Shown here: positions 6,937 through 19,926 of the stretch, piece by piece
Layout: the number at the start of each line of letters is the position of its first letter
Numbering within the stretch: the stretch's first letter is position 1
Sequence record: OR050627.1
Direction: 5' to 3' (one strand)
DNA: 64,000 nt
Notes under the pieces: generated by a model
Seen by the model: only the letters and a program-made list of their open reading frames with translations
Told to the model about the DNA's origin: nothing
Database searches by the model: none
Translations under genes and position numbers: made by a program

Positions 6937-9900
6937 ATGCTATACAAATACACAACACTCCCGGCAGATACTTCAGCGTTACCAGTAGGCGCTTTGATTC
7001 TTACAAAGAGTGGTGACGGTTACATTCTTGACAATAATAAAGTTGCGGTGCCTTTCAAAGGTAATGTACTTACTACTACGCTAATAAACAATTGGAATGA
7101 CGCTTACACTAAAGCGCATGTGCATGCTAACAAAGATACGTTGGACCTTATTAGCTTACTTTCAATTCAAAAATGGGATGAGGCTTACTCACTAAAGCAC
7201 TCGCATACTAACCTGGCAACGTTAGAAACTATAACTCCTTCTAAAATTGCTGAGTGGAACAGTGCAATGAAGTTTATAAAAACATTGTCTACTGAGGACT
7301 TAGATACTGTAATTACTAACGGAATCTATACTCAGCCATCTAATGCCAACGCGACAACAGCAAATCACTATCCAATTGGTTACGCCGGAACGTTAACAGT
7401 GCTAGGCAATGGTACTAACCACATTGTTCAGGAATATGTTAGGCTTGCGTCAGGTGCTACTGGCAACGTAAAATATCGCAGATACTACTATGTTTCATCA
7501 GGATGGTCTAACTGGCAAAAATCGTTAGATGATCGTGATATTACTCAGGCAATGATTGATTCTTGGAATCTTGCAGTGTCTTGGGGTAACCACGCATCGG
7601 CTGGATATTTAACTAGCACTACTGGTGACGCTAGGTATCTAAAACTTACTGGAGGCACATTAACTGGTGATGTTGCAGTAACTGGAGGTAAAACATTTAC
7701 ATTCACTGCTACCGATGGCAAAACTTATGAAGTTAACGGTTCAGGCACTAAGCATACTTCTGGAGCTAACGTTTTCAGCACTAACTTTATTAACGCTACA
7801 ACGTATGGGCTGACTCATGGTACTCAGCAAATGCTAACCAAGGACATTACTAACAACATACTAAAAATTGGTAATGACACTGCACCTGCACAATTAAGAT
7901 TAAAATCTGCAGTAGGTCCAAATCCTACATCAACAGTACTTACTGATAGCAATGGTGACGTTTCTATAGTTCCTGCTTTACCGCTATTTACGAACTATCT
8001 TGAACCGCAACTAATTGCTAATGCTGATAGCGCAACAACAAAAGGCATAGAGCTTAACTACTTAGACTCTACTTCACTAAACAAACCTACTACATTAGCT
8101 AACGGAACGTTAATGTCGTTGAACATAAACAGTTCAGGAGGCTCGCAATTAGCAATATCAACATCAACTGATCCTGCAGTTTATTTCAGAACTAGATCAA
8201 ACACTACATTCGGTGGATGGACTAGGTTAGCTACAACTAACGATCTTACTGCAATTGGCAATGACTATATTAGCAAAACTACTAACGACTTACCTGCTAA
8301 TTCGGCTTGGTATGTTAAGAAAGGAACTTCTGGAATTGGTGTAGTAGATACTAACTTTATTGGATTGTTTGATGCTTCTACAAAAGCTTACGTTACTGGC
8401 GGAGTGCTAAAAATTGTTAATGGGGGTGTAGAAACTAATGCATTATCTACATTTAACGGAACGACTACGTTCAACAACAACACTACTTATGTTAACGCTA
8501 GTACGTTATTTATGTTAGGCGTGCATAACGCTACGCTAGGTATGCAAGGCAACGGCAGACTTTCCGTAACGTCTGGAAGTGCTAACAAAACCGGTAGTAT
8601 AATTGTTGAAGGAGATTCACCAATTATTGCAAGACCTGAAACTATAGTTAATTCTGATACTGTACTTGCAAACTTACCTGTAGGTACTCATGGTGCAGGT
8701 ACTAGCATAGGAGGCGTTAATGCATCATTCATAACTTTTGGTAGCCCAGTTACTGGAACTAAAACAAACTTGCTTGGCTCTACTACAGGCTTCTTGAAAT
8801 TCAGATCATCGTCAGGTGCTACTTTTAACGATTGGAAGTCTTTAGTTTCTTTTGAAGACTTACAATTAGCTACTACAGAAACTTCAGTTAGCTTAACGTT
8901 CAATGGCGTAACAAAGACTGCGCCAATAACTACCGGAACGTTAACTGGCGTAATGTACACAAACAACTGGACATTACCATTTGGTACAACTAAAGGTTAT
9001 ATTGATATTGAAATGCCGACGTCTACTACCGGTGACATAGTACTTACGTTAGTAGGCTACTGGGGTAACGAACGACAATCAGGTTCTGTTAAGTATCAAA
9101 TTGGATTTGGCGCAAATACTACTCAGATTTACGATCAGTATGCAAATATAGTTTCGGTTACAGGAGGTCAAGTTTTGTTAGATAGCTATGCAGTTAATTT
9201 ATCTGCGGCTATAGTGCTAGTTAATGCTAAGCCTTGTTTACGTATTTGGTGTATGCGTGATGGCATTTCACAAACTAACACAGTTAGGGCTTTCTTACAA
9301 ATAAAAACTAGACAAGGTACTCCGTTTACATCATTGGCTGATGTTAAGCCGTTAGCTTTCGTAGCAGAGCCTAACATACCAACATTTATGGACCTTGACC
9401 AGGCGCCTAAGTCAGTTTCATTTAATCAGATTGCAGTAAGATCATCTGCGCAAAATGATGACAACGCCGCAATTAAGCTTAAAACTGCTAGAATTTCAAC
9501 ATCGCCAACAAATACAAATGGTATTCGTGTAGTAGGTACATCAAATACTGCAGCAGGTTATCTTTATTTAGGTTCAGGTAACAATAGACTAGGAGTTGAT
9601 GACGGCTCAGCAAATTCGCCTTTGCTTTATAACTCATCACCAGTAGTTACAAGAGACTATGCTATAGCAAATGGTTTTATATTTTCAGAAGGCAATGCCA
9701 GAGGTACTATAAATGGAGTTTCTGCTGAAGTAGGACTTCCTGCTAACTCATTTAAACCAGTAAAATCAGGATTCTACAGAGCTAATGGCGAAAACAACTG
9801 GGGCGCATTATCGCTAAACATTGCACACCCATCGCAATCTAATGGAGGATTTATGGCAGGTATTGCTTTTGATTATTCGGGAGCTAATGCATACTTAACG

Positions 9901-12900
9901 GGTAATGATTCGGCAGGTAACAAACTTCCTAACAAGAAAATTTTAACATCTGCAGATATCGACATATCTAAGTATTGGGAGAAATGGACCGATGGCACTA
10001 ATGTAGGATTTAATAATGTTACACCTTACTACTTCCTAGGCGCAGATGCTAACACTGCACAGAAAGTTTATACTGGCGGATTACTTGCATCAAACAGCTT
10101 CAGTGATGGTACTAAAATTCCTACTTTTGGATTATATTCAAAGGGTGACATTGCATTTGACGGCAATTTAAACAGGTTATCAGGCGAATTAAACATTCAA
10201 CGTACAGGCATTAATAAGCTTAGAACTAACGGGCCATCTACAATTTTATCTGCCGAAGCGACTAACACTACATCAGGTGCTTTTATTAGACCTTTAGGTG
10301 ATAACAATACTGCAGGGCAAACTATATTTGCTAAAGACATCGTACGTTACAACACAAAAGCTAGACAATTTAGTAGTGTATCTAACGTAACTAAATATGA
10401 AAACTTGGCAGCAGTATCGTTGGCACATAACGGCCCTAGTACAATAAAAGTTATGTTCCCTCATAGTTTGAATACTATAATGTGGAACATTAAGCTTACT
10501 GTAGTTTCATATACTGGCGCAAACAATACTAACGTTAACCAGCTGCCAATGGAACTAACAATTTCAGGTTATGGCTCGGCGCCTACAACACCGTCGACTA
10601 ATACTGGTGCTTCTGTAGTGAACGCGTTTCCTGCGTTCACTGGAGTTAAAATTGGTTTAGATGATGCTACTGGCTTTAAAACGTTAATGCTTAATTTTAG
10701 TGCGCCTTTAGCATATCCAAAAGTCATAATCGACCAAGTAATTTATCATCACTCTGGGCTAACGCCGACAATTACTGACTTAGATAATGACTATGTTATT
10801 ACACAAACTGCTGACGAAACTGGATTTACTGCACAAACTGATATTCCGTTAACGCAATTTAAAGGTTATTTTGACATTGCTAAGGCTAGCACAGCATTTC
10901 CTACTAACATAGCTAATGCTAACCAAGCATCAGCAATAAACCAGGATATGAACACATTGCCTAGCGGTAACTACGTTGGCGGTGTAAGTGTATCTGCACA
11001 AAATTTGCCGATTCCTGTAGGCACTGGCAATCCAGGAGGCTTAATATCTTTTGGTAGCGGTTCACAGACGACTAGAATTCTAGGCGCTAGTGATGGTTCT
11101 GATAATCTTTGGTTTAATTCAGGTACTTCTACAAAATGGTATCAGCTAGCTTCAAGAGATTACGTAACTACGCAATTAGCAAACTACATACCAACGTCAC
11201 AGAAAGGCGTAGCTAATGGGGTTGCTACGTTAGATGCTAATGGTACTGTACCTTCTACGCAACTGCCTTCTTACGTTGATGATGTTTTAGAATTTGCATC
11301 GTTATCGGCATTCCCAGCAGTAGGTGAATCTGGTAAAATTTATATTGCTATTGATACTAATTTACAGTATAGATGGTCTGGTTCAGTTTACGTACCTATT
11401 ATGAGTTCCGGAGGTGTAATATCCGTAAATGGTAAAACTGGCATAGTTACTTTAGATAAAACTGACATTGGTTTAGGAAATGTAGACAATACTGCAGATA
11501 ACGTAAAGAACGTACTTAGCGCCACTAAGTGGACTACGCCAAGAACATTTACGTTAAATGGTGACATTTCTGCTATAGGTACAGTTGATGGCTCGGCTAA
11601 CGTAACGTTCGCAACTACTTTGCCAAACATTGTAACTGCAGGAACTTATAAAATTACTACAGTCAATGCTAAAGGCCAAGTTACTGGAGGTTCAAATCCT
11701 ACAACTTTAGCAGGCTTTGGCATTACTGATGCTATGTCAACATCGCATCCAGCTAATGTGATTACTTCAACTGACATTGCTAACTGGAATGCTCAAGTAG
11801 CAGTAGGCAATTTTAGAACTTATGGTTTAGGAACATACAATGCACAAACTATATCTGATTTTAATACGTTACAGACGCAACTTGAAAATGTAACTAGATT
11901 CTATGGTTCAGTTAATGCTGCAGTTACTAATGGGCCTGCCGGAATTGATTATCCTGGAGGTGTTTTTAATAGTATAAGTAATGCAGTACAATCTGCATTA
12001 GTTTTTGGAGGTCATGGCAATAACAATGGTTTAGCATACAGAAACAAAACTGGTACTAATGCATGGGGTAACTGGATATACGCTTGGACAGACAAGCATT
12101 TTAGCCAAACTAACATAAACAATTGGAATGCCGCGTTTGGTTGGGGTAACCACTCAACTCAAGGCTACTTAAAGGCTGCAGATTTAACAGGATTAGTTAA
12201 GAAATCTGGCGATACTATGTCAGGTATGCTTACGATAAACTCAACATCGCAACCATTAGCACTTAAAGGCGCATCTGCAAATACTAACTACACTACTTAC
12301 ATTAAACATGATGGCAGCGGTAATATTGGATTTATTGGTTCAAATGGCGGTGGTGCTATTGGTGATGGCGGAACTGGTGACCGATTTGTAATTCGCGGAA
12401 CTGCAGGTCTTGATCTTTATAATGATGCTGGTGCAATTACTGCTAATGGTGGCGCAATTTGGAGCACTATGCATTTTTCAAGCACTGATTTAGAAAGTTT
12501 CTTTGAAGCTTATAATAACAGCATTTCAGGCGGAACTATGACACCTACACAGCTACAGCTTACAAGAACAGGGTCCACTCCAATTAACATTGCTATACCG
12601 ACGTTCAACCAAAATACTACAGGCAATGCAGGTTCTGCAACTAAATTGCAAACTGCAAGGACTATAAAAATTGGTGAGCAATCAGGAGCTTTTGATGGTA
12701 CTGGAAACTTAACTTTCGGTCACAACGAAATGAAAGTTACTATGTGCGGTGTTAAGACATATGGCGAATCTTGGAACTCAGTAGTAGTGCTAGATACTAG
12801 AAATGCCAGCCCATTACCATCGACAGATTTACAATCAGCAGTTACATTTGACTTTAAGCAGTCATCTGCAATTGGACTAAATAGCATTCCTGGAGTTTCT

Positions 12901-14058
12901 ACATATGCAAGTGCTATTACTATGGCGCCATTCGTTAACGACTCCGGTAATAATAATTCTGCATTTACACTAGCTCAATCTAATGGTGTTTTAGCATTTA
13001 AAAATTATGTTAATGGCGCATGGGGTTCATGGATTAAATTGTTAACATCTGCAGATATTTCTACAGCGTCAATTAACAACTGGAACCAGGCATATTCTTG
13101 GGGTAACCATGCAAATGCAGGCTATATGTCCAAGTCTACGCAGATGGGAATATTAAGTTTTAACAGTTTATCTGGAACTGGTGCTAACGGAATTTATCGT
13201 TCTGATGCTGACCCAACTACAGCAAATGGCGTTAAGAACAAGTATTCGCCAATGTTGCATATGGGCGCTTCTGATACAATGACGCAATTGTCCATAGCTT
13301 ACCAAACTGGTGAACTTTCATTCAGAGGAGGCTACAATAATAGCTGGCAAGATTGGCGTACTGCTTGGGATAACGTTAATTTACCTCAGCCAGTAACAAG
13401 AAACACTGCACAAACTATTACGGCAGATAAAACTCACACAGAGAACATTTTGCTTAATGGTAACAACATGATTAAGTTTTTTGGTACTGCGTCAACAAGA
13501 GTAATGATACTATCTGCTGATAGAATTACTGGTTGGACTGGTATCTCTGATGACCAAGATCGTAAAGTTGCAGGTATTGACTATGGTTCAGGTAACTATA
13601 CGTTAGGTGAAATGATCTATGTTAGGAAGACTAACAATGGCACTGGTAATGTAGGTATTAGATCAACTCCGCATGCAACATATCCAGTTTACTTAAATGG
13701 TGACACTGCATGTACTGGTAACTTCATTGGTGTAGGATTCTATGAGTCTTCACGTAGGGCACTGAAAACTAACATTAAAGCTTTTGAGAAATCAGGACTT
13801 GACTTAGTTAATGAACTTGACATTGTAACGTTTGACCGTAAGGACAACGAGGAAATTAAAGATAAAATCGGAGTTATCATAGATGACACACCATCCGAAT
13901 TTGCTTCAATTTCAGGTGATGAGGTTGACTTATACAAAACAACCTTCATTCAAGCCAAGGCTATTCAGGAACTTTCTGCAACTGTTGAGAAGCAATCTGC
14001 CGAAATTGAAGAGCTAAAGAAAATGGTAAATATATTACTAAAAGGTACGAATGGATAA
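6937..14058 (+). CDS. Long tail fibre / receptor-binding protein with multiple knob modules and C-terminal peptidase S74 intramolecular chaperone
   Basis: 2373 aa, G/T/N/S-rich; pyocin-knob-like modules ending in W-x-x-W; HxH motifs; three WGNH repeats; C-terminal YESSRRALKTNI...IGVI...KAIQEL plus coiled coil. Confidence 0.9.
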   Translation: MLYKYTTLPADTSALPVGALILTKSGDGYILDNNKVAVPFKGNVLTTTLINNWNDAYTKAHVHANKDTLDLISLLSIQKWDEAYSLKHSHTNLATLETITPSKIAEWNSAMKFIKTLSTEDLDTVITNGIYTQPSNANATTANHYPIGYAGTLTVLGNGTNHIVQEYVRLASGATGNVKYRRYYYVSSGWSNWQKSLDDRDITQAMIDSWNLAVSWGNHASAGYLTSTTGDARYLKLTGGTLTGDVAVTGGKTFTFTATDGKTYEVNGSGTKHTSGANVFSTNFINATTYGLTHGTQQMLTKDITNNILKIGNDTAPAQLRLKSAVGPNPTSTVLTDSNGDVSIVPALPLFTNYLEPQLIANADSATTKGIELNYLDSTSLNKPTTLANGTLMSLNINSSGGSQLAISTSTDPAVYFRTRSNTTFGGWTRLATTNDLTAIGNDYISKTTNDLPANSAWYVKKGTSGIGVVDTNFIGLFDASTKAYVTGGVLKIVNGGVETNALSTFNGTTTFNNNTTYVNASTLFMLGVHNATLGMQGNGRLSVTSGSANKTGSIIVEGDSPIIARPETIVNSDTVLANLPVGTHGAGTSIGGVNASFITFGSPVTGTKTNLLGSTTGFLKFRSSSGATFNDWKSLVSFEDLQLATTETSVSLTFNGVTKTAPITTGTLTGVMYTNNWTLPFGTTKGYIDIEMPTSTTGDIVLTLVGYWGNERQSGSVKYQIGFGANTTQIYDQYANIVSVTGGQVLLDSYAVNLSAAIVLVNAKPCLRIWCMRDGISQTNTVRAFLQIKTRQGTPFTSLADVKPLAFVAEPNIPTFMDLDQAPKSVSFNQIAVRSSAQNDDNAAIKLKTARISTSPTNTNGIRVVGTSNTAAGYLYLGSGNNRLGVDDGSANSPLLYNSSPVVTRDYAIANGFIFSEGNARGTINGVSAEVGLPANSFKPVKSGFYRANGENNWGALSLNIAHPSQSNGGFMAGIAFDYSGANAYLTGNDSAGNKLPNKKILTSADIDISKYWEKWTDGTNVGFNNVTPYYFLGADANTAQKVYTGGLLASNSFSDGTKIPTFGLYSKGDIAFDGNLNRLSGELNIQRTGINKLRTNGPSTILSAEATNTTSGAFIRPLGDNNTAGQTIFAKDIVRYNTKARQFSSVSNVTKYENLAAVSLAHNGPSTIKVMFPHSLNTIMWNIKLTVVSYTGANNTNVNQLPMELTISGYGSAPTTPSTNTGASVVNAFPAFTGVKIGLDDATGFKTLMLNFSAPLAYPKVIIDQVIYHHSGLTPTITDLDNDYVITQTADETGFTAQTDIPLTQFKGYFDIAKASTAFPTNIANANQASAINQDMNTLPSGNYVGGVSVSAQNLPIPVGTGNPGGLISFGSGSQTTRILGASDGSDNLWFNSGTSTKWYQLASRDYVTTQLANYIPTSQKGVANGVATLDANGTVPSTQLPSYVDDVLEFASLSAFPAVGESGKIYIAIDTNLQYRWSGSVYVPIMSSGGVISVNGKTGIVTLDKTDIGLGNVDNTADNVKNVLSATKWTTPRTFTLNGDISAIGTVDGSANVTFATTLPNIVTAGTYKITTVNAKGQVTGGSNPTTLAGFGITDAMSTSHPANVITSTDIANWNAQVAVGNFRTYGLGTYNAQTISDFNTLQTQLENVTRFYGSVNAAVTNGPAGIDYPGGVFNSISNAVQSALVFGGHGNNNGLAYRNKTGTNAWGNWIYAWTDKHFSQTNINNWNAAFGWGNHSTQGYLKAADLTGLVKKSGDTMSGMLTINSTSQPLALKGASANTNYTTYIKHDGSGNIGFIGSNGGGAIGDGGTGDRFVIRGTAGLDLYNDAGAITANGGAIWSTMHFSSTDLESFFEAYNNSISGGTMTPTQLQLTRTGSTPINIAIPTFNQNTTGNAGSATKLQTARTIKIGEQSGAFDGTGNLTFGHNEMKVTMCGVKTYGESWNSVVVLDTRNASPLPSTDLQSAVTFDFKQSSAIGLNSIPGVSTYASAITMAPFVNDSGNNNSAFTLAQSNGVLAFKNYVNGAWGSWIKLLTSADISTASINNWNQAYSWGNHANAGYMSKSTQMGILSFNSLSGTGANGIYRSDADPTTANGVKNKYSPMLHMGASDTMTQLSIAYQTGELSFRGGYNNSWQDWRTAWDNVNLPQPVTRNTAQTITADKTHTENILLNGNNMIKFFGTASTRVMILSADRITGWTGISDDQDRKVAGIDYGSGNYTLGEMIYVRKTNNGTGNVGIRSTPHATYPVYLNGDTACTGNFIGVGFYESSRRALKTNIKAFEKSGLDLVNELDIVTFDRKDNEEIKDKIGVIIDDTPSEFASISGDEVDLYKTTFIQAKAIQELSATVEKQSAEIEELKKMVNILLKGTNG

Positions 14059-16450: not shown

Positions 16451-16873
16451 ATGGCAAATTTCTTAATTGCATACAAAAAGACAGGAGGCTTTGAAGGCGG
16501 CTGGAACCACATAAAAGGAGATACTGGAGGAGAAACATATTGCGGAATTGCAAGAAACTATTGGCCTAAATGGGCTGGCTGGGCAATCATAGATTCTAAA
16601 AAGCCAATTAAAACAGGTACAATTTTTAAAGACAACGCTAAACTTGAAGATTTAGTGCATGCGTTTTACAAAACTAATTTCTGGGACGTTGTCGGTGGAG
16701 ATGACATCGAGGACCAAACTATAGCTAACACGCTTTATGATTTTGGGGTTAACGCCGGAACGTCAAGATCAGTTAAGCAAATTCAGGGCGCTTTAGGCTT
16801 AGCACAAACTGGTAAAGTAGACAAAGCTTTAGTTGAAGCTATCAACAATCCATCCAAAAACTTACTTAAATAA
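16451..16873 (+). CDS. Endolysin, glycoside hydrolase family 108 catalytic part (lacks C-terminal PG_binding_3 segment)
   Basis: FEGGW, DTGGETYCGI, FY..NFW, YDFGVNAG motifs of GH108; stops at 140 aa after ...ALVEAINN. Confidence 0.9.
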   Translation: MANFLIAYKKTGGFEGGWNHIKGDTGGETYCGIARNYWPKWAGWAIIDSKKPIKTGTIFKDNAKLEDLVHAFYKTNFWDVVGGDDIEDQTIANTLYDFGVNAGTSRSVKQIQGALGLAQTGKVDKALVEAINNPSKNLLK

Positions 16874-16877
16874 CAAA

Positions 16878-17546
16878 ATGAAGAACATATTTTTTAGTAT
16901 GATGTTAGGGCTTTTTGCTTTAACATCATGCAACAACAAAAATGCTAGTAACGTTAAGAATGACGTTGACTCATTAACACTAGTAGACACTGCGTTTATC
17001 GTAGTAGACTCAGCAACTAGAGATTCAGTTCCAATTTACATCGAACAGGAAGCTTACGACAATAAAGCACAGATTGCTAAAGAAGAGTTTAGCAGACTTA
17101 AAAAATCGGCCGACTCACTTTACAATATTACGTTATCACTTAAGCATCTGGAAGGTCAGTATGCCAATATAATCGCAACAGGCAAAGCAGACTACAAAAG
17201 CTTAGACGCTAAAAAGATTAAGTTAGCACAATATAAAGCTAAACTTAAAGCTAACTTAGAACGTAAAATTGTTAAAAAGTCATTTGACGATGAAGTCATA
17301 GCTTCACCAATATTTACTGAGGCAGACTCTGCAAAAGACAAATTTGTAGTATATCTTGGTGTTATAGAAAAAATTGAGACTGAGATCATACCTACATTAA
17401 AAGAACAAGAACTTGACATTAGTCGATCTACATTGCATAAAAAGTTAGTAGTTGCAAATGCACAATATTACTTAAACATCACATTACGTAATCCAAGCCA
17501 GGACAAATTCTTGAAAGGTTGGACACGAAGAGCCTGGTCTCAGTAA
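16878..17546 (+). CDS. Lipoprotein carrying the GH108-type C-terminal PG_binding_3 motif
   Basis: ATG 16878 MKNIFFSMMLGLFALTSC (lipobox Cys18), helical stalk, ends QYYLNITLRNPSQDKFLKGWTRRA. Confidence 0.8.
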   Translation: MKNIFFSMMLGLFALTSCNNKNASNVKNDVDSLTLVDTAFIVVDSATRDSVPIYIEQEAYDNKAQIAKEEFSRLKKSADSLYNITLSLKHLEGQYANIIATGKADYKSLDAKKIKLAQYKAKLKANLERKIVKKSFDDEVIASPIFTEADSAKDKFVVYLGVIEKIETEIIPTLKEQELDISRSTLHKKLVVANAQYYLNITLRNPSQDKFLKGWTRRAWSQ

Positions 17547-17549
17547 CAA

Positions 17550-17557
17550 TATAAATA
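17550..17557 (+). promoter_or_regulatory. Possible T4-type late promoter TATAAATA
   Basis: Exact TATAAATA 37 nt upstream of the PAS gene; another exact copy at 37707, near-copies at 4983 and 5412; could arise by chance in AT-rich DNA. Confidence 0.35.
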
Positions 17558-17593
17558 CTAAAATTTAAAAAACAAAATCCAGAATAAAACCAA

Positions 17594-18208
17594 ATGACTA
17601 TGTCTATACTACAAGACTACAGCGTAGTTATAGGAAGCATTCTAGTTATTGTCGCTACATTTTTGAAAAAAGGTAATGTTCAACAACTAAACCAGTATAT
17701 TAACACAATTAATATGCTGAGAGTTGACTTATTAGCACTCAAAAAGGACAATGCAGATATTGCATCCGACATACGTAAGTTACAGGCCGAATTGCACGAC
17801 AAGGATCGTTTGGTTGCATTATTGGAAGCGACTTCTTGGGACTTACCGTTTCCTTATTGGCTTAAGGACATGCAACATAACATGGTGTACATTAATGCTA
17901 AATATGAAAAAACGTTTAACGTTAGGTCCATTGATTATGTTGGCAAAAAAGATAGCGACATCTGGCCTGTAGAAATTGCCGAAAAGTTCAAAGCTAATGA
18001 CCAAAAGATGATTGACGGTGACGACGAGTTTATAATTTCACAAACAGAAGTTGACGGCTTTGTAGTCATAAAATGGAAACGTTGGGCTGGTAGCATTTTA
18101 ATTGGCGTTGCAGGAATGTGTATACCAATTAATGTATTTCATAATTTTACGCAAGATGTCTTAAACGTAGTTAATCAGAATAACAGCAATGAGCGAACAC
18201 GAAACTAA
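17594..18208 (+). CDS. Membrane-anchored coiled-coil plus PAS-domain protein (holin/lysis-regulator candidate)
   Basis: N-terminal TM (YSVVIGSILVIVATF), coiled coil, then LPFPYWLKD...YINAKYE...VGKKDSDIWP...F.AND..M PAS_4-like fold. Confidence 0.75.
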   Translation: MTMSILQDYSVVIGSILVIVATFLKKGNVQQLNQYINTINMLRVDLLALKKDNADIASDIRKLQAELHDKDRLVALLEATSWDLPFPYWLKDMQHNMVYINAKYEKTFNVRSIDYVGKKDSDIWPVEIAEKFKANDQKMIDGDDEFIISQTEVDGFVVIKWKRWAGSILIGVAGMCIPINVFHNFTQDVLNVVNQNNSNERTRN

Positions 18209-18587
18209 CACAGAATATACAATGCCGCAAGAGGAAACTACAGCAGGCGGCATCTTAAACAACATGGAGCTTGCTCAAAAAAATCCTAGTTTATGGCTTT
18301 GGATTGGAATTATAATAGCAATAGTAGCCATTTTTGGCTATTTTACAAGGTCGCAAGAGCTTAGAATCGATGAGGTTAAGGCTGAACGTGATACTTGGAA
18401 GAGTAAATTTGAGGAAGTGTCTAAAGCTTACAATGAATTATTGATGAGTCGATACTACGGAAACGTTACTACTATGCCAGGAGTTCCTCAAGTTCCTCAT
18501 GATTCAGTTGGCAAATTCCAAAACCAGGATGCAATAAGACCAAAAGAACTAGAAGACAAAACAAAAACAAATACTGACAATGATTAA
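18189..18587 (+). CDS. Single-TM membrane protein with coiled coil (holin/antiholin or spanin-associated candidate)
   Basis: TM LWLWIGIIIAIVAIFGYF followed by a coiled coil; overlaps both neighbours. Confidence 0.65.
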   Translation: MSEHETNTEYTMPQEETTAGGILNNMELAQKNPSLWLWIGIIIAIVAIFGYFTRSQELRIDEVKAERDTWKSKFEEVSKAYNELLMSRYYGNVTTMPGVPQVPHDSVGKFQNQDAIRPKELEDKTKTNTDND

Positions 18588-19212
18588 AACAATTAAAAGC
18601 GCTATAGTTATTACAACAATTGCGCTTTTTGCGTTTGGATGCGGTGCACGTAAAGTCGATCTTTCAAAACATAAGGAAGTTGAAACTACTGAATATGCCA
18701 AAGAAAACGTAAAGCAAACAGAAAGTAACGTACAGACTAACGTTACGCAGAGCGAAAAGAACGTAACTACTAAGCAAACAGAAGCTACGAAGAGCGAAAA
18801 GGCTGATAATACTGAGCTAAACATAACAATTGAACCTTCAGGAAAAGGTGAAGTTGCTGAGTATGAATTTGTATTTGGTGACAAAGTTTTCAAAGGCAAA
18901 ACGTCAGGTAAGCTAATAGTTTCCAACAAAACTGGAACTAACGTTAAGGACGAAAAGAACGTTAGTAACGAAAATGCTAACAACGAAAAGAACGCTAGCG
19001 ACAATAGCGTAAGTAACGTAAAAGCTTCAGAAGCAAACAAAGAGTCTGGCTCTAGCGAAAATAAAGTAGAAGACAAAACTAAAAACACTGACAAAAAGGA
19101 ACCGTTTATTTTCAATTTCATGTCAGGCCTAGCCATTGTAGCAGGTGTTGCTATACTAGGATTCCTTGTCTACTTAGTATTACTTAGATTTGGATTGATT
19201 AAAAGAACATAG
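18580..19212 (+). CDS. Unimolecular spanin (u-spanin) candidate
   Basis: N-terminal lipobox LFAFGC, polar T/N/K/E/S-rich linker, C-terminal TM plus basic tail; lies in the lysis module. Confidence 0.75.
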   Translation: MIKTIKSAIVITTIALFAFGCGARKVDLSKHKEVETTEYAKENVKQTESNVQTNVTQSEKNVTTKQTEATKSEKADNTELNITIEPSGKGEVAEYEFVFGDKVFKGKTSGKLIVSNKTGTNVKDEKNVSNENANNEKNASDNSVSNVKASEANKESGSSENKVEDKTKNTDKKEPFIFNFMSGLAIVAGVAILGFLVYLVLLRFGLIKRT

Positions 19213-19890: not shown

Positions 19891-19895
19891 TTATA

Positions 19896-19926
19896 AGCCT
19901 AGCACTCAAAAAGTGCTAGGCTTTTT
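19896..19926 (+). terminator. Rho-independent terminator
   Basis: AAGCCTAGCACT-caaaa-AGTGCTAGGCTT plus T run. Confidence 0.85.

Follow-up and report, generated by a model that had tools for sequence, protein, structure and literature searches.

We find that a membrane-anchored PAS-domain protein of Chryseobacterium phage MA9V-1 very likely acts on the timing of host lysis, either by forming the membrane hole or by controlling it, because it belongs to a phage-specific family that adjoins a cell-wall-cutting enzyme in many unrelated Bacteroidota phages. We rate it as a lysis-control membrane protein with a cytoplasmic sensor domain, representing an undescribed phage-specific family; by Pfam and PHROG it belongs to no described holin, antiholin or spanin family, and no description of a PAS protein in a lysis cassette came up in our literature searches. 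As to its exact role, our tentative first choice is that it is a dedicated holin-step lysis protein that itself forms the hole, a "sensor holin" with a single transmembrane (TM) helix and a cytoplasmic regulatory domain.

The PAS-protein gene and its surroundings in MA9V-1

The window, by which we mean the whole 64-kb stretch of DNA analysed, is the last 64 kb of MA9V-1 (OR050627.1), a 213.5-kb jumbo myovirus infecting C. indologenes MA9. The gene and the parts of its product lie as follows.

17594..18208, plus strand: PAS-protein gene (MA9V1_193), 204 aa; from the ORF call, with 100% identity to OR050627.1 and a conserved family
17618..17665, plus strand: TM helix, codons 9-24, the sole N-terminal TM; KD17 2.06, with an uncharged/acidic N-tail before it and KK after it
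17681..17833, plus strand: coiled coil, codons ~30-80, ~7 heptads; from AF2 helix 4-80 and heptads read from the sequence
17840..18127, plus strand: PAS domain, codons 83-178; from Pfam, AF2, Foldseek, PDB sequence search and alignment

GenBank starts MA9V1_193 6 nt later, at Met3, and labels it hypothetical. The 97%-identical gene of the sister phage MA9V-2 is annotated "regulatory protein ... PAS", and gp089 of Cellulophaga phage phi14:2 is annotated just as "PAS domain-containing protein".

From its N-terminus the protein has a short acidic tail, a single TM helix rich in Gly, ~7 heptads of coiled coil and then a canonical PAS domain, which opens with the family motif DxPxPxWLKD. Pfam PAS_4 (PF08448) matches residues 84-145 with 28.8 bits (gathering threshold 23.1, E 1.6e-6), and relatives cover positions 4-108 of the 110 in the model, with up to 41.7 bits and E down to 1.5e-10. 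The AF2 model, computed from an 86-sequence alignment, has a mean pLDDT of 85.7, with 10-residue block means of 84-94 across residues 81-180. In it a single continuous helix (4-80) leads into a PAS core of five strands (88-178), which a C-terminal helix (179-202) follows; the strands at 88-92, 97-100, 146-149, 156-165 and 168-178, with helices between them, make up a five-stranded antiparallel sheet. All of the best 50 Foldseek matches in the PDB are PAS domains (50/50, probability 1.00). The a/d residues of the coiled coil (L32 Y35 I39 L42 L46 L49 N53 I56 I60 L63 L67 K70 V74 L77) keep an unbroken heptad pattern over residues 32-77, with Asn53 in an "a" position; in GCN4-type zippers, Asn at "a" favours parallel dimers. 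Searches of Pfam and NCBIfam found no kinase or other output domain, and there is no HTH domain, the chain ending ~25 residues past the PAS domain. The ORF lies on the plus strand exactly at the positions given in the first-pass annotation, 17594-18208, and the reading of the product there as one N-terminal TM, a coiled coil and a PAS_4-like domain with no output domain agrees with all of these results. Residues 166-180 were also considered as a second TM helix and rejected, since this hydrophobic stretch is the last PAS strand in the AF2 model.

The neighbouring features are listed below.

16451..16873, plus strand: GH108 muramidase protein, 140 aa; Pfam GH108 E 1.7e-17, PHROG endolysin, no signal peptide or hydrophobic segment
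16878..17546, plus strand: lipoprotein, 222 aa, ending in the C-terminal half of PG_binding_3 (last ~35 residues); from profile matches and alignment
18189..18587, plus strand: single-TM protein, 132 aa, with acidic N-tail, helical region and charged tail; weak PHROG Rz-like matches only
18580..19212, plus strand: u-spanin-like protein, 210 aa, with N-terminal lipobox and C-terminal TM; from sequence features
19895..19923, plus strand: terminator-like hairpin, 12-bp stem and T-run; from a sequence scan

The GH108 protein, at position -2 relative to the PAS gene, is probably the endolysin of this cassette, and the u-spanin-like gene lies at +2. The gene had been placed, from the sequence alone, between endolysin halves and a spanin; the GH108, PG_binding_3 lipoprotein and u-spanin-like neighbours bear this out, with an extra TM gene before the spanin. 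This extra gene starts within the PAS gene, overlapping it by 20 nt. Homologues of its 132-aa product occur in two metagenomic relatives (L004 and L005), which keep the MA9V-1 cassette order at 64-67% identity; a homologue search with the protein returned nothing beyond MA9V-2. It is a candidate partner of the PAS protein, either a holin or i-spanin-like, and the two probably work together in MA9V-1. One further ORF separates the u-spanin-like gene from the strong terminator-like hairpin, which would close a tail-plus-lysis transcription unit. A sigma-70 promoter scan gave 25 matches against 24 expected, which is chance level, and the consensus does not suit Bacteroidota.

The published analysis of MA9V-1 (PMC10537231) named ORF144, "lysozyme RrrD", as the endolysin and identified no holin. 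ORF144, the only other lysozyme of this phage, is an 822-aa protein encoded among head-assembly genes (L076:11284-13752, that is 119283-121751 of the MA9V-1 record, outside the window), and this fits a virion-associated lysin rather than a lysis endolysin. For lysis from within, we infer that the cassette ending the tail operon (16451-19212) is a better candidate than ORF144. This corrects the published lysis annotation, which names ORF144 and leaves the 16451-19212 cassette as hypothetical proteins.

Two further observations concern the genes upstream. The endolysin appears split: in the intact GH108+PG_binding_3 lysin of L028 (180 aa), residues 62-115 align to the 140-aa GH108 ORF and residues 143-176 to the last ~35 residues of the 16878-17546 ORF, which is otherwise a lipoprotein with a helical region; the split is common to MA9V-2, L004 and L005. 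Directly upstream of the cassette region lies a 2373-aa tail-fibre-like ORF (6937-14058), whose C-terminal ~120 residues we take to resemble an intramolecular chaperone of the Peptidase_S74 type.

A phage family linked to lysins

Nearly all members of the family come from phage or metagenome DNA. When 5.8 billion proteins were searched with a profile, 86 clusters at 90% identity emerged, every one of 164-229 aa, and HMMER run exhaustively over 1.84 billion representatives gave 379 at E<=1e-30; among the best 150 of these 379, ~95 are full-length proteins of ~190-230 aa and the others are long multi-PAS proteins that match in the PAS part only. Family loci number 19 in IMG/VR and 37 in metagenomes. 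Among 185,579 prokaryotic species genomes (one genome per species) there are 3, one of them at a prophage end in Maribacter, and among deposited phages (50,697 genomes) clear members are limited to phi14:2, MA9V-1 and MA9V-2. Across the family P85, W89, K91 and N101 are invariant or nearly so, followed in conservation by E78, D83, P87, L90, D92, Y115, D120, D136, K160, R163, I170, G171 and G174; Y104 and F132 are also conserved. The PAS protein has no significant PHROG family, no holin match in Pfam or PHROG and no spanin match. In the precomputed annotation of two members (P0023 and P0034), the Pfam accession PF27605 is placed ahead of PAS_4.

The PAS proteins were clustered at 60% identity into 37 lineages; counts for the following gene (+1) cover 35 of them and counts for the preceding one (-1) all 37. 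The +1 gene encodes a recognised peptidoglycan hydrolase in 12 of the 35 lineages, and these hydrolases come from six unrelated families: GH19 (1), GH24 (2), GH108 (2), Peptidase_M15_3 (3), Peptidase_M15_4 (2) and Amidase_2 (2). Two further lineages of the 35 have a lysin candidate, DUF5675, in this place, which would make a seventh family. The -1 gene is a hydrolase in 1-2 of 37 lineages, a directional bias (Fisher p = 4.6e-4) that also stands far above a 2% background (binomial p = 2e-12). In most cases the start of the +1 gene overlaps the PAS stop codon by 1-17 nt. The association spans podo-, myo- and P2-like genomes. It is well illustrated by two PAS proteins that share at least 60% identity: that of the crAss-like phage phi14:2 is encoded immediately upstream of a GH19 lysin and that of the Maribacter prophage immediately upstream of a lambda-R/Gifsy-type GH24 lysozyme, two unrelated enzymes. 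Elsewhere the gene immediately downstream encodes Peptidase_M15_3, an intact GH108+PG_binding_3 protein, Amidase_2, Peptidase_M15_4 or DUF5675, and in L023 the PAS gene is two genes from a Peptidase_M23. Holin-endolysin cassettes are classically mosaic in just this way, the membrane gene staying constant as the lysin is exchanged. That homologues would be linked to lysis genes, as the first-pass annotation expected, is thus borne out by +1 hydrolases of six families in unrelated phages.

No signal or SAR sequence was found in the adjacent lysins, and all of them should therefore need a holin. Spanin-like genes follow the PAS gene in several cassettes: a protein with lipobox and C-terminal TM in MA9V-1, L008, L017/L057 and L042, LysC in L033, and a recurrent gp087-like protein in the crAss-like cassettes. 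A lysin at +1, overlap with the stop codon and spanin-like genes after it are the signature of a holin-step lysis gene.

We consider it quite unlikely that the protein is a moron or other membrane sensor that merely sits beside lysis genes and acts in superinfection exclusion, host signalling or anti-defence. The borders of lysis modules are common moron sites, ~40% of lineages have no recognised lysin beside the PAS gene (e.g. L007, L009 and L012), and some copies sit between capsid or portal genes. Such a role is difficult to reconcile with translational coupling to the lysin and with a directional +1 association that holds for six lysin families in podo-, myo- and P2-like genomes. Moreover, PADLOC returned no match for the window proteins, the MA9V-1 PAS protein among them, or for phi14:2 gp089, and only a sub-threshold coiled-coil match to JetC (E 0.009) for P0012, and in the window no terminator-like hairpin separates the PAS gene from its cassette neighbours.

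Several other features of these neighbourhoods are worth recording. A protein of ~190-245 aa recurs beside the PAS gene in crAss-like and marine cassettes (L018:7138-7713, L031:6100-6753, L026:7529-8119, L025:7418-7996 and L009:6569-7300). It has an N-terminal TM or lipobox, and its C-terminus resembles ...GYD...IKF, the last residue being aromatic as it is in beta-signals of the outer membrane; no Pfam or NCBIfam family matches it, and it may be an undescribed spanin-like envelope protein. DUF5675 occupies the endolysin slot after the PAS gene at L031:5678-6097, L019:6557-6970 and L066:4582-4995. These proteins share an invariant His...Gly-Cys (H85, G95, C96) reminiscent of L,D-transpeptidase/C82 peptidases, and a 2026 preprint calls DUF5675 C82-peptidase-like; we count them as candidate lysins because of the cassette slot, the conserved motif and this preprint. 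The AF2 model of DUF5675 was poor (pLDDT 53), Foldseek gave no match at E<=0.001 and the PDB sequence search was empty. Finally, HNH/Endonuclease_7-like genes are inserted between the lysin and the spanin-like gene at L026:7013-7507 and L033:5953-6522.

Membrane topology and the holin step

In 85 of 86 family members a hydrophobic segment begins at about residue 5-8. The N-flank of this segment carries mean charges of +0.19/-0.88, the 15 residues after it carry a mean of +2.9 and include the conserved motif YKLGNRKQD, and the C-flank is the more positive in 84 of 85 members. Because the N-tail lacks positive charge and is followed by a strongly basic flank, the positive-inside rule predicts an N-out/C-in topology, which would leave the coiled coil and PAS domain in the cytoplasm; a topology prediction had been among the follow-ups proposed for this gene. 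The same charge pattern bears on the idea of an i-spanin-like envelope protein, in which an N-in/C-out orientation would place the coiled coil and PAS domain in the periplasm to pair with neighbouring lipoproteins. A TM followed by a coiled coil beside lipoprotein genes does resemble Rz, and the cassettes of L029/L030 and L023 have a lone lipoprotein without an obvious i-spanin. We nevertheless find this reading highly improbable: the N-tail is almost free of positive charge while 84 of 85 members have a strongly basic YKLGNRKQD motif, the PAS domain belongs with canonical cytoplasmic ones and has the VqmA PAS and the ArcB linker-PAS as nearest relatives, many cassettes already have a u-spanin-like gene, and the PAS protein has no PHROG spanin match.

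The TM helix itself is 47% G/A/S/T with a mean of 3.5 Gly. The mean majority-residue fraction is 0.54 in the TM and 0.68 in the juxtamembrane segment, and TM conservation equals that of the coiled coil; judged from the alignment, a passive anchor would not be expected to show such conservation. Of 48 distinct N-termini, 6 have a second Met within 6 residues of the first, as in a dual-start motif, including those of phi14:2 gp089 (Met-Lys-Met, start L018:5962-5970) and the MA9V-1 protein (Met-Thr-Met). Among these the phi14:2 MKM is the only one that adds a positive charge, and a lambda-like dual start was rejected as a family feature.

What else the cassettes encode bears on whether the protein makes the hole or governs another protein that does so. 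Within -3..+5 genes, 9-10 of 18 lysin-linked cassettes encode no further TM protein that is small and not a lipoprotein (phi14:2, the Maribacter prophage, L026, L031, L029/L030, L036, L042 and L073). The remaining ~8 of 18 also encode classical-looking small TM proteins, which are 65-83 aa long at -1 in L057, L060 and L065, 73 and 76 aa in L033, and 132 aa in MA9V-1. In addition, two divergent members on contigs of 51-56% GC (L023:1849-2322 and L024:5860-6312) have the coiled coil and PAS domain but no TM, and their genes have as neighbours a lipoprotein gene, an M23 peptidase gene and separate genes for small TM proteins. We therefore take seriously, without thinking it probable, the alternative that the PAS protein is an antiholin or lysis-timing regulator that forms no holes and binds a separate holin through its TM and coiled coil, the PAS state blocking or licensing that holin; in MA9V-1 this would be the 132-aa protein (18189-18587). 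Linkage to the lysis cassette applies equally to this role, and PAS domains are typical sensor and regulator modules. The TM-less members beside separate small TM proteins fit it well, as do the small TM proteins in ~8 of 18 lysin-linked cassettes, including the overlapping one in MA9V-1. On the other side stand the 9-10 of 18 cassettes with soluble endolysins and no other holin candidate nearby, and the constancy with which the PAS gene stays directly 5' of the lysin even as the enzyme there switches from one family to another. Antiholins tend to be accessory genes of patchy occurrence, which we also count against this alternative.

Our preference for the PAS protein as the hole-forming component is based on the lysin at +1, the soluble endolysins that need a holin, the 9-10 of 18 cassettes without another candidate, the conserved TM and juxtamembrane segments, the phage-only distribution, the spanin-like genes that follow and the virion-lysin-like nature of ORF144. 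Weighing against it are the TM-less L023 and L024 members beside separate small TM proteins, the ~8 of 18 cassettes with small TM proteins, the ~40% of lineages without a recognised lysin and the rarity of the lambda-like dual start (6/48). Known holins also rarely bear a folded cytoplasmic domain of ~100 residues, a further point against. The presence of a second small TM protein in part of the cassettes means that holin and antiholin roles are not separable in silico. Of the original suggestion of a holin or lysis-timing regulator, membership of the lysis cassette is thus supported by comparative genomics.

If the PAS protein does form the hole, it would be made from the late operon along with the soluble GH108 endolysin and the spanin-like protein, and would insert in the inner membrane with its ~8-residue N-tail outside and the remainder in the cytoplasm. 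It may dimerise via the ~7-heptad coiled coil, and the Gly-rich TM helices would be kept harmless up to the point at which the cytoplasmic PAS dimer switches, on gaining or losing a ligand or on altering its oligomerisation. The TM helices could then assemble into lesions through which the endolysin reaches the wall, and the spanin would disrupt the outer membrane.

Possible ligands and comparison with known systems

What might the PAS domain sense? The 86-member family alignment contains no conserved Cys column and only two His-rich columns, position 81 in the pre-PAS linker (63/86) and position 135 in PAS helix 126-141 (45/86); neither is invariant, and the MA9V-1 protein has Ser and Asn there. 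With no conserved Cys and no invariant His, heme, LOV or ArcB-type redox sensing finds no support. Nor did any of our analyses lend support to the first-pass suggestion that lysis is coupled to the metabolic state of the host. The PDB sequence profile search placed three VqmA entries first (6ugl, 6kju and 6ide; E 7e-5), followed by an HD-GYP PAS domain (E 1.7e-3), and hhalign against VqmA-Phage (vibriophage VP882 gp56) gave E 1.8e-4 over 88 columns. Pocket residues of VqmA, including F67, F99 and K101, have been tested by Huang et al. (bioRxiv 10.1101/2019.12.19.881847). VqmA residues correspond to the family as follows.

VqmA K23: family K91, 86/86
VqmA Y36: family Y104, 74 Y and 11 F of 86
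VqmA F67: family F132, 72 F and 8 Y of 86
VqmA D71: family D136, 85/86
VqmA K101: family K160, 84/86
VqmA F99: family position 158, aliphatic (V/I/L)

This correspondence suggests a conserved small-molecule pocket in the PAS domain, with a similarity to VqmA that is modest (25 bits), and the kinship is only a lead towards ligand binding rather than redox sensing. A more specific version of the hole-forming role, which we think unlikely, is a ligand-gated holin whose VqmA-like cytoplasmic pocket would bind a small molecule from the host, for example a pyrazine of the autoinducer kind or some other metabolite, and directly gate assembly of the Gly-rich TM helices via the coiled coil. If this were true, Bacteroidota phages including marine Crassvirales would gain a post-translational lysis-timing switch that responds to cell density or host state, and the holin of these phages would be identified.

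Lysis timing is a central life-history trait of phages, and in the usual view the holin sets it by the clock of its own accumulation. To our knowledge, T4 lysis inhibition, with its action in the periplasm, is the only external input to it that is well understood. A protein with a sensor domain, conserved in the holin position, would be a new route for cytoplasmic information into the lysis decision. It would also give Bacteroidota phages, marine crAss-like ones among them, a strong candidate for holin or antiholin, and with three cultured phages carrying the gene (phi14:2, MA9V-1 and MA9V-2) the idea is directly testable.

Among known holins there is a parallel with T4 T, a class III holin of about 218 aa with the antiholins RI and RIII. 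Both proteins are of about 200-220 aa, with one TM, a large folded soluble domain and a soluble endolysin partner, and the soluble domain of T carries regulatory input for lysis timing; at 204 aa the PAS protein is at the upper end of the holin class. There is, however, no sequence match between them, and a T4-type holin from Proteus phage phiP4-3 is a very weak structural match (rank 50, E 0.59, TM 0.38). The orientations also differ: T is N-in/C-out with a periplasmic regulatory domain, whereas the PAS protein is predicted to be N-out/C-in, with a cytoplasmic PAS fold preceded by a coiled coil. The S-R-Rz order of lambda, with S105/S107, offers another parallel, as the PAS gene lies directly 5' of the endolysin gene, often with overlapping stop and start, the N-terminus would be outside, the Maribacter prophage copy precedes a lambda-R/Gifsy-type lysozyme, and the MKM of gp089 recalls S107. 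Unlike S, the PAS protein has one TM rather than three and a predicted cytoplasmic part of ~180 residues comprising the coiled coil and PAS domain, and the dual start is not general.

Outside the holins, no solved structure is closer to the PAS domain in sequence than that of the DPO receptor VqmA/VqmA-Phage, and in VP882 the timing of phage lysis is likewise decided by such a PAS domain. As a soluble transcription factor, VqmA ends in a LuxR-type HTH, whereas the present family has a TM and coiled coil, no DNA-binding domain and a location in the lysis cassette. The membrane-proximal module of ArcB has the same order of TM, leucine zipper and PAS, and NCBIfam gives a weak local match to it, confined to model positions 107-248 (16-29 bits, where the cutoff is 838; P0023 has E 2e-7, the MA9V-1 protein E 3e-3). 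ArcB differs in having two TMs rather than one, in its kinase, receiver and HPt domains, and in the quinone-sensing Cys180/Cys241, to which no conserved Cys of the family corresponds. Read from its sequence, the PAS protein has the architecture of a sensor module that comes without its kinase.
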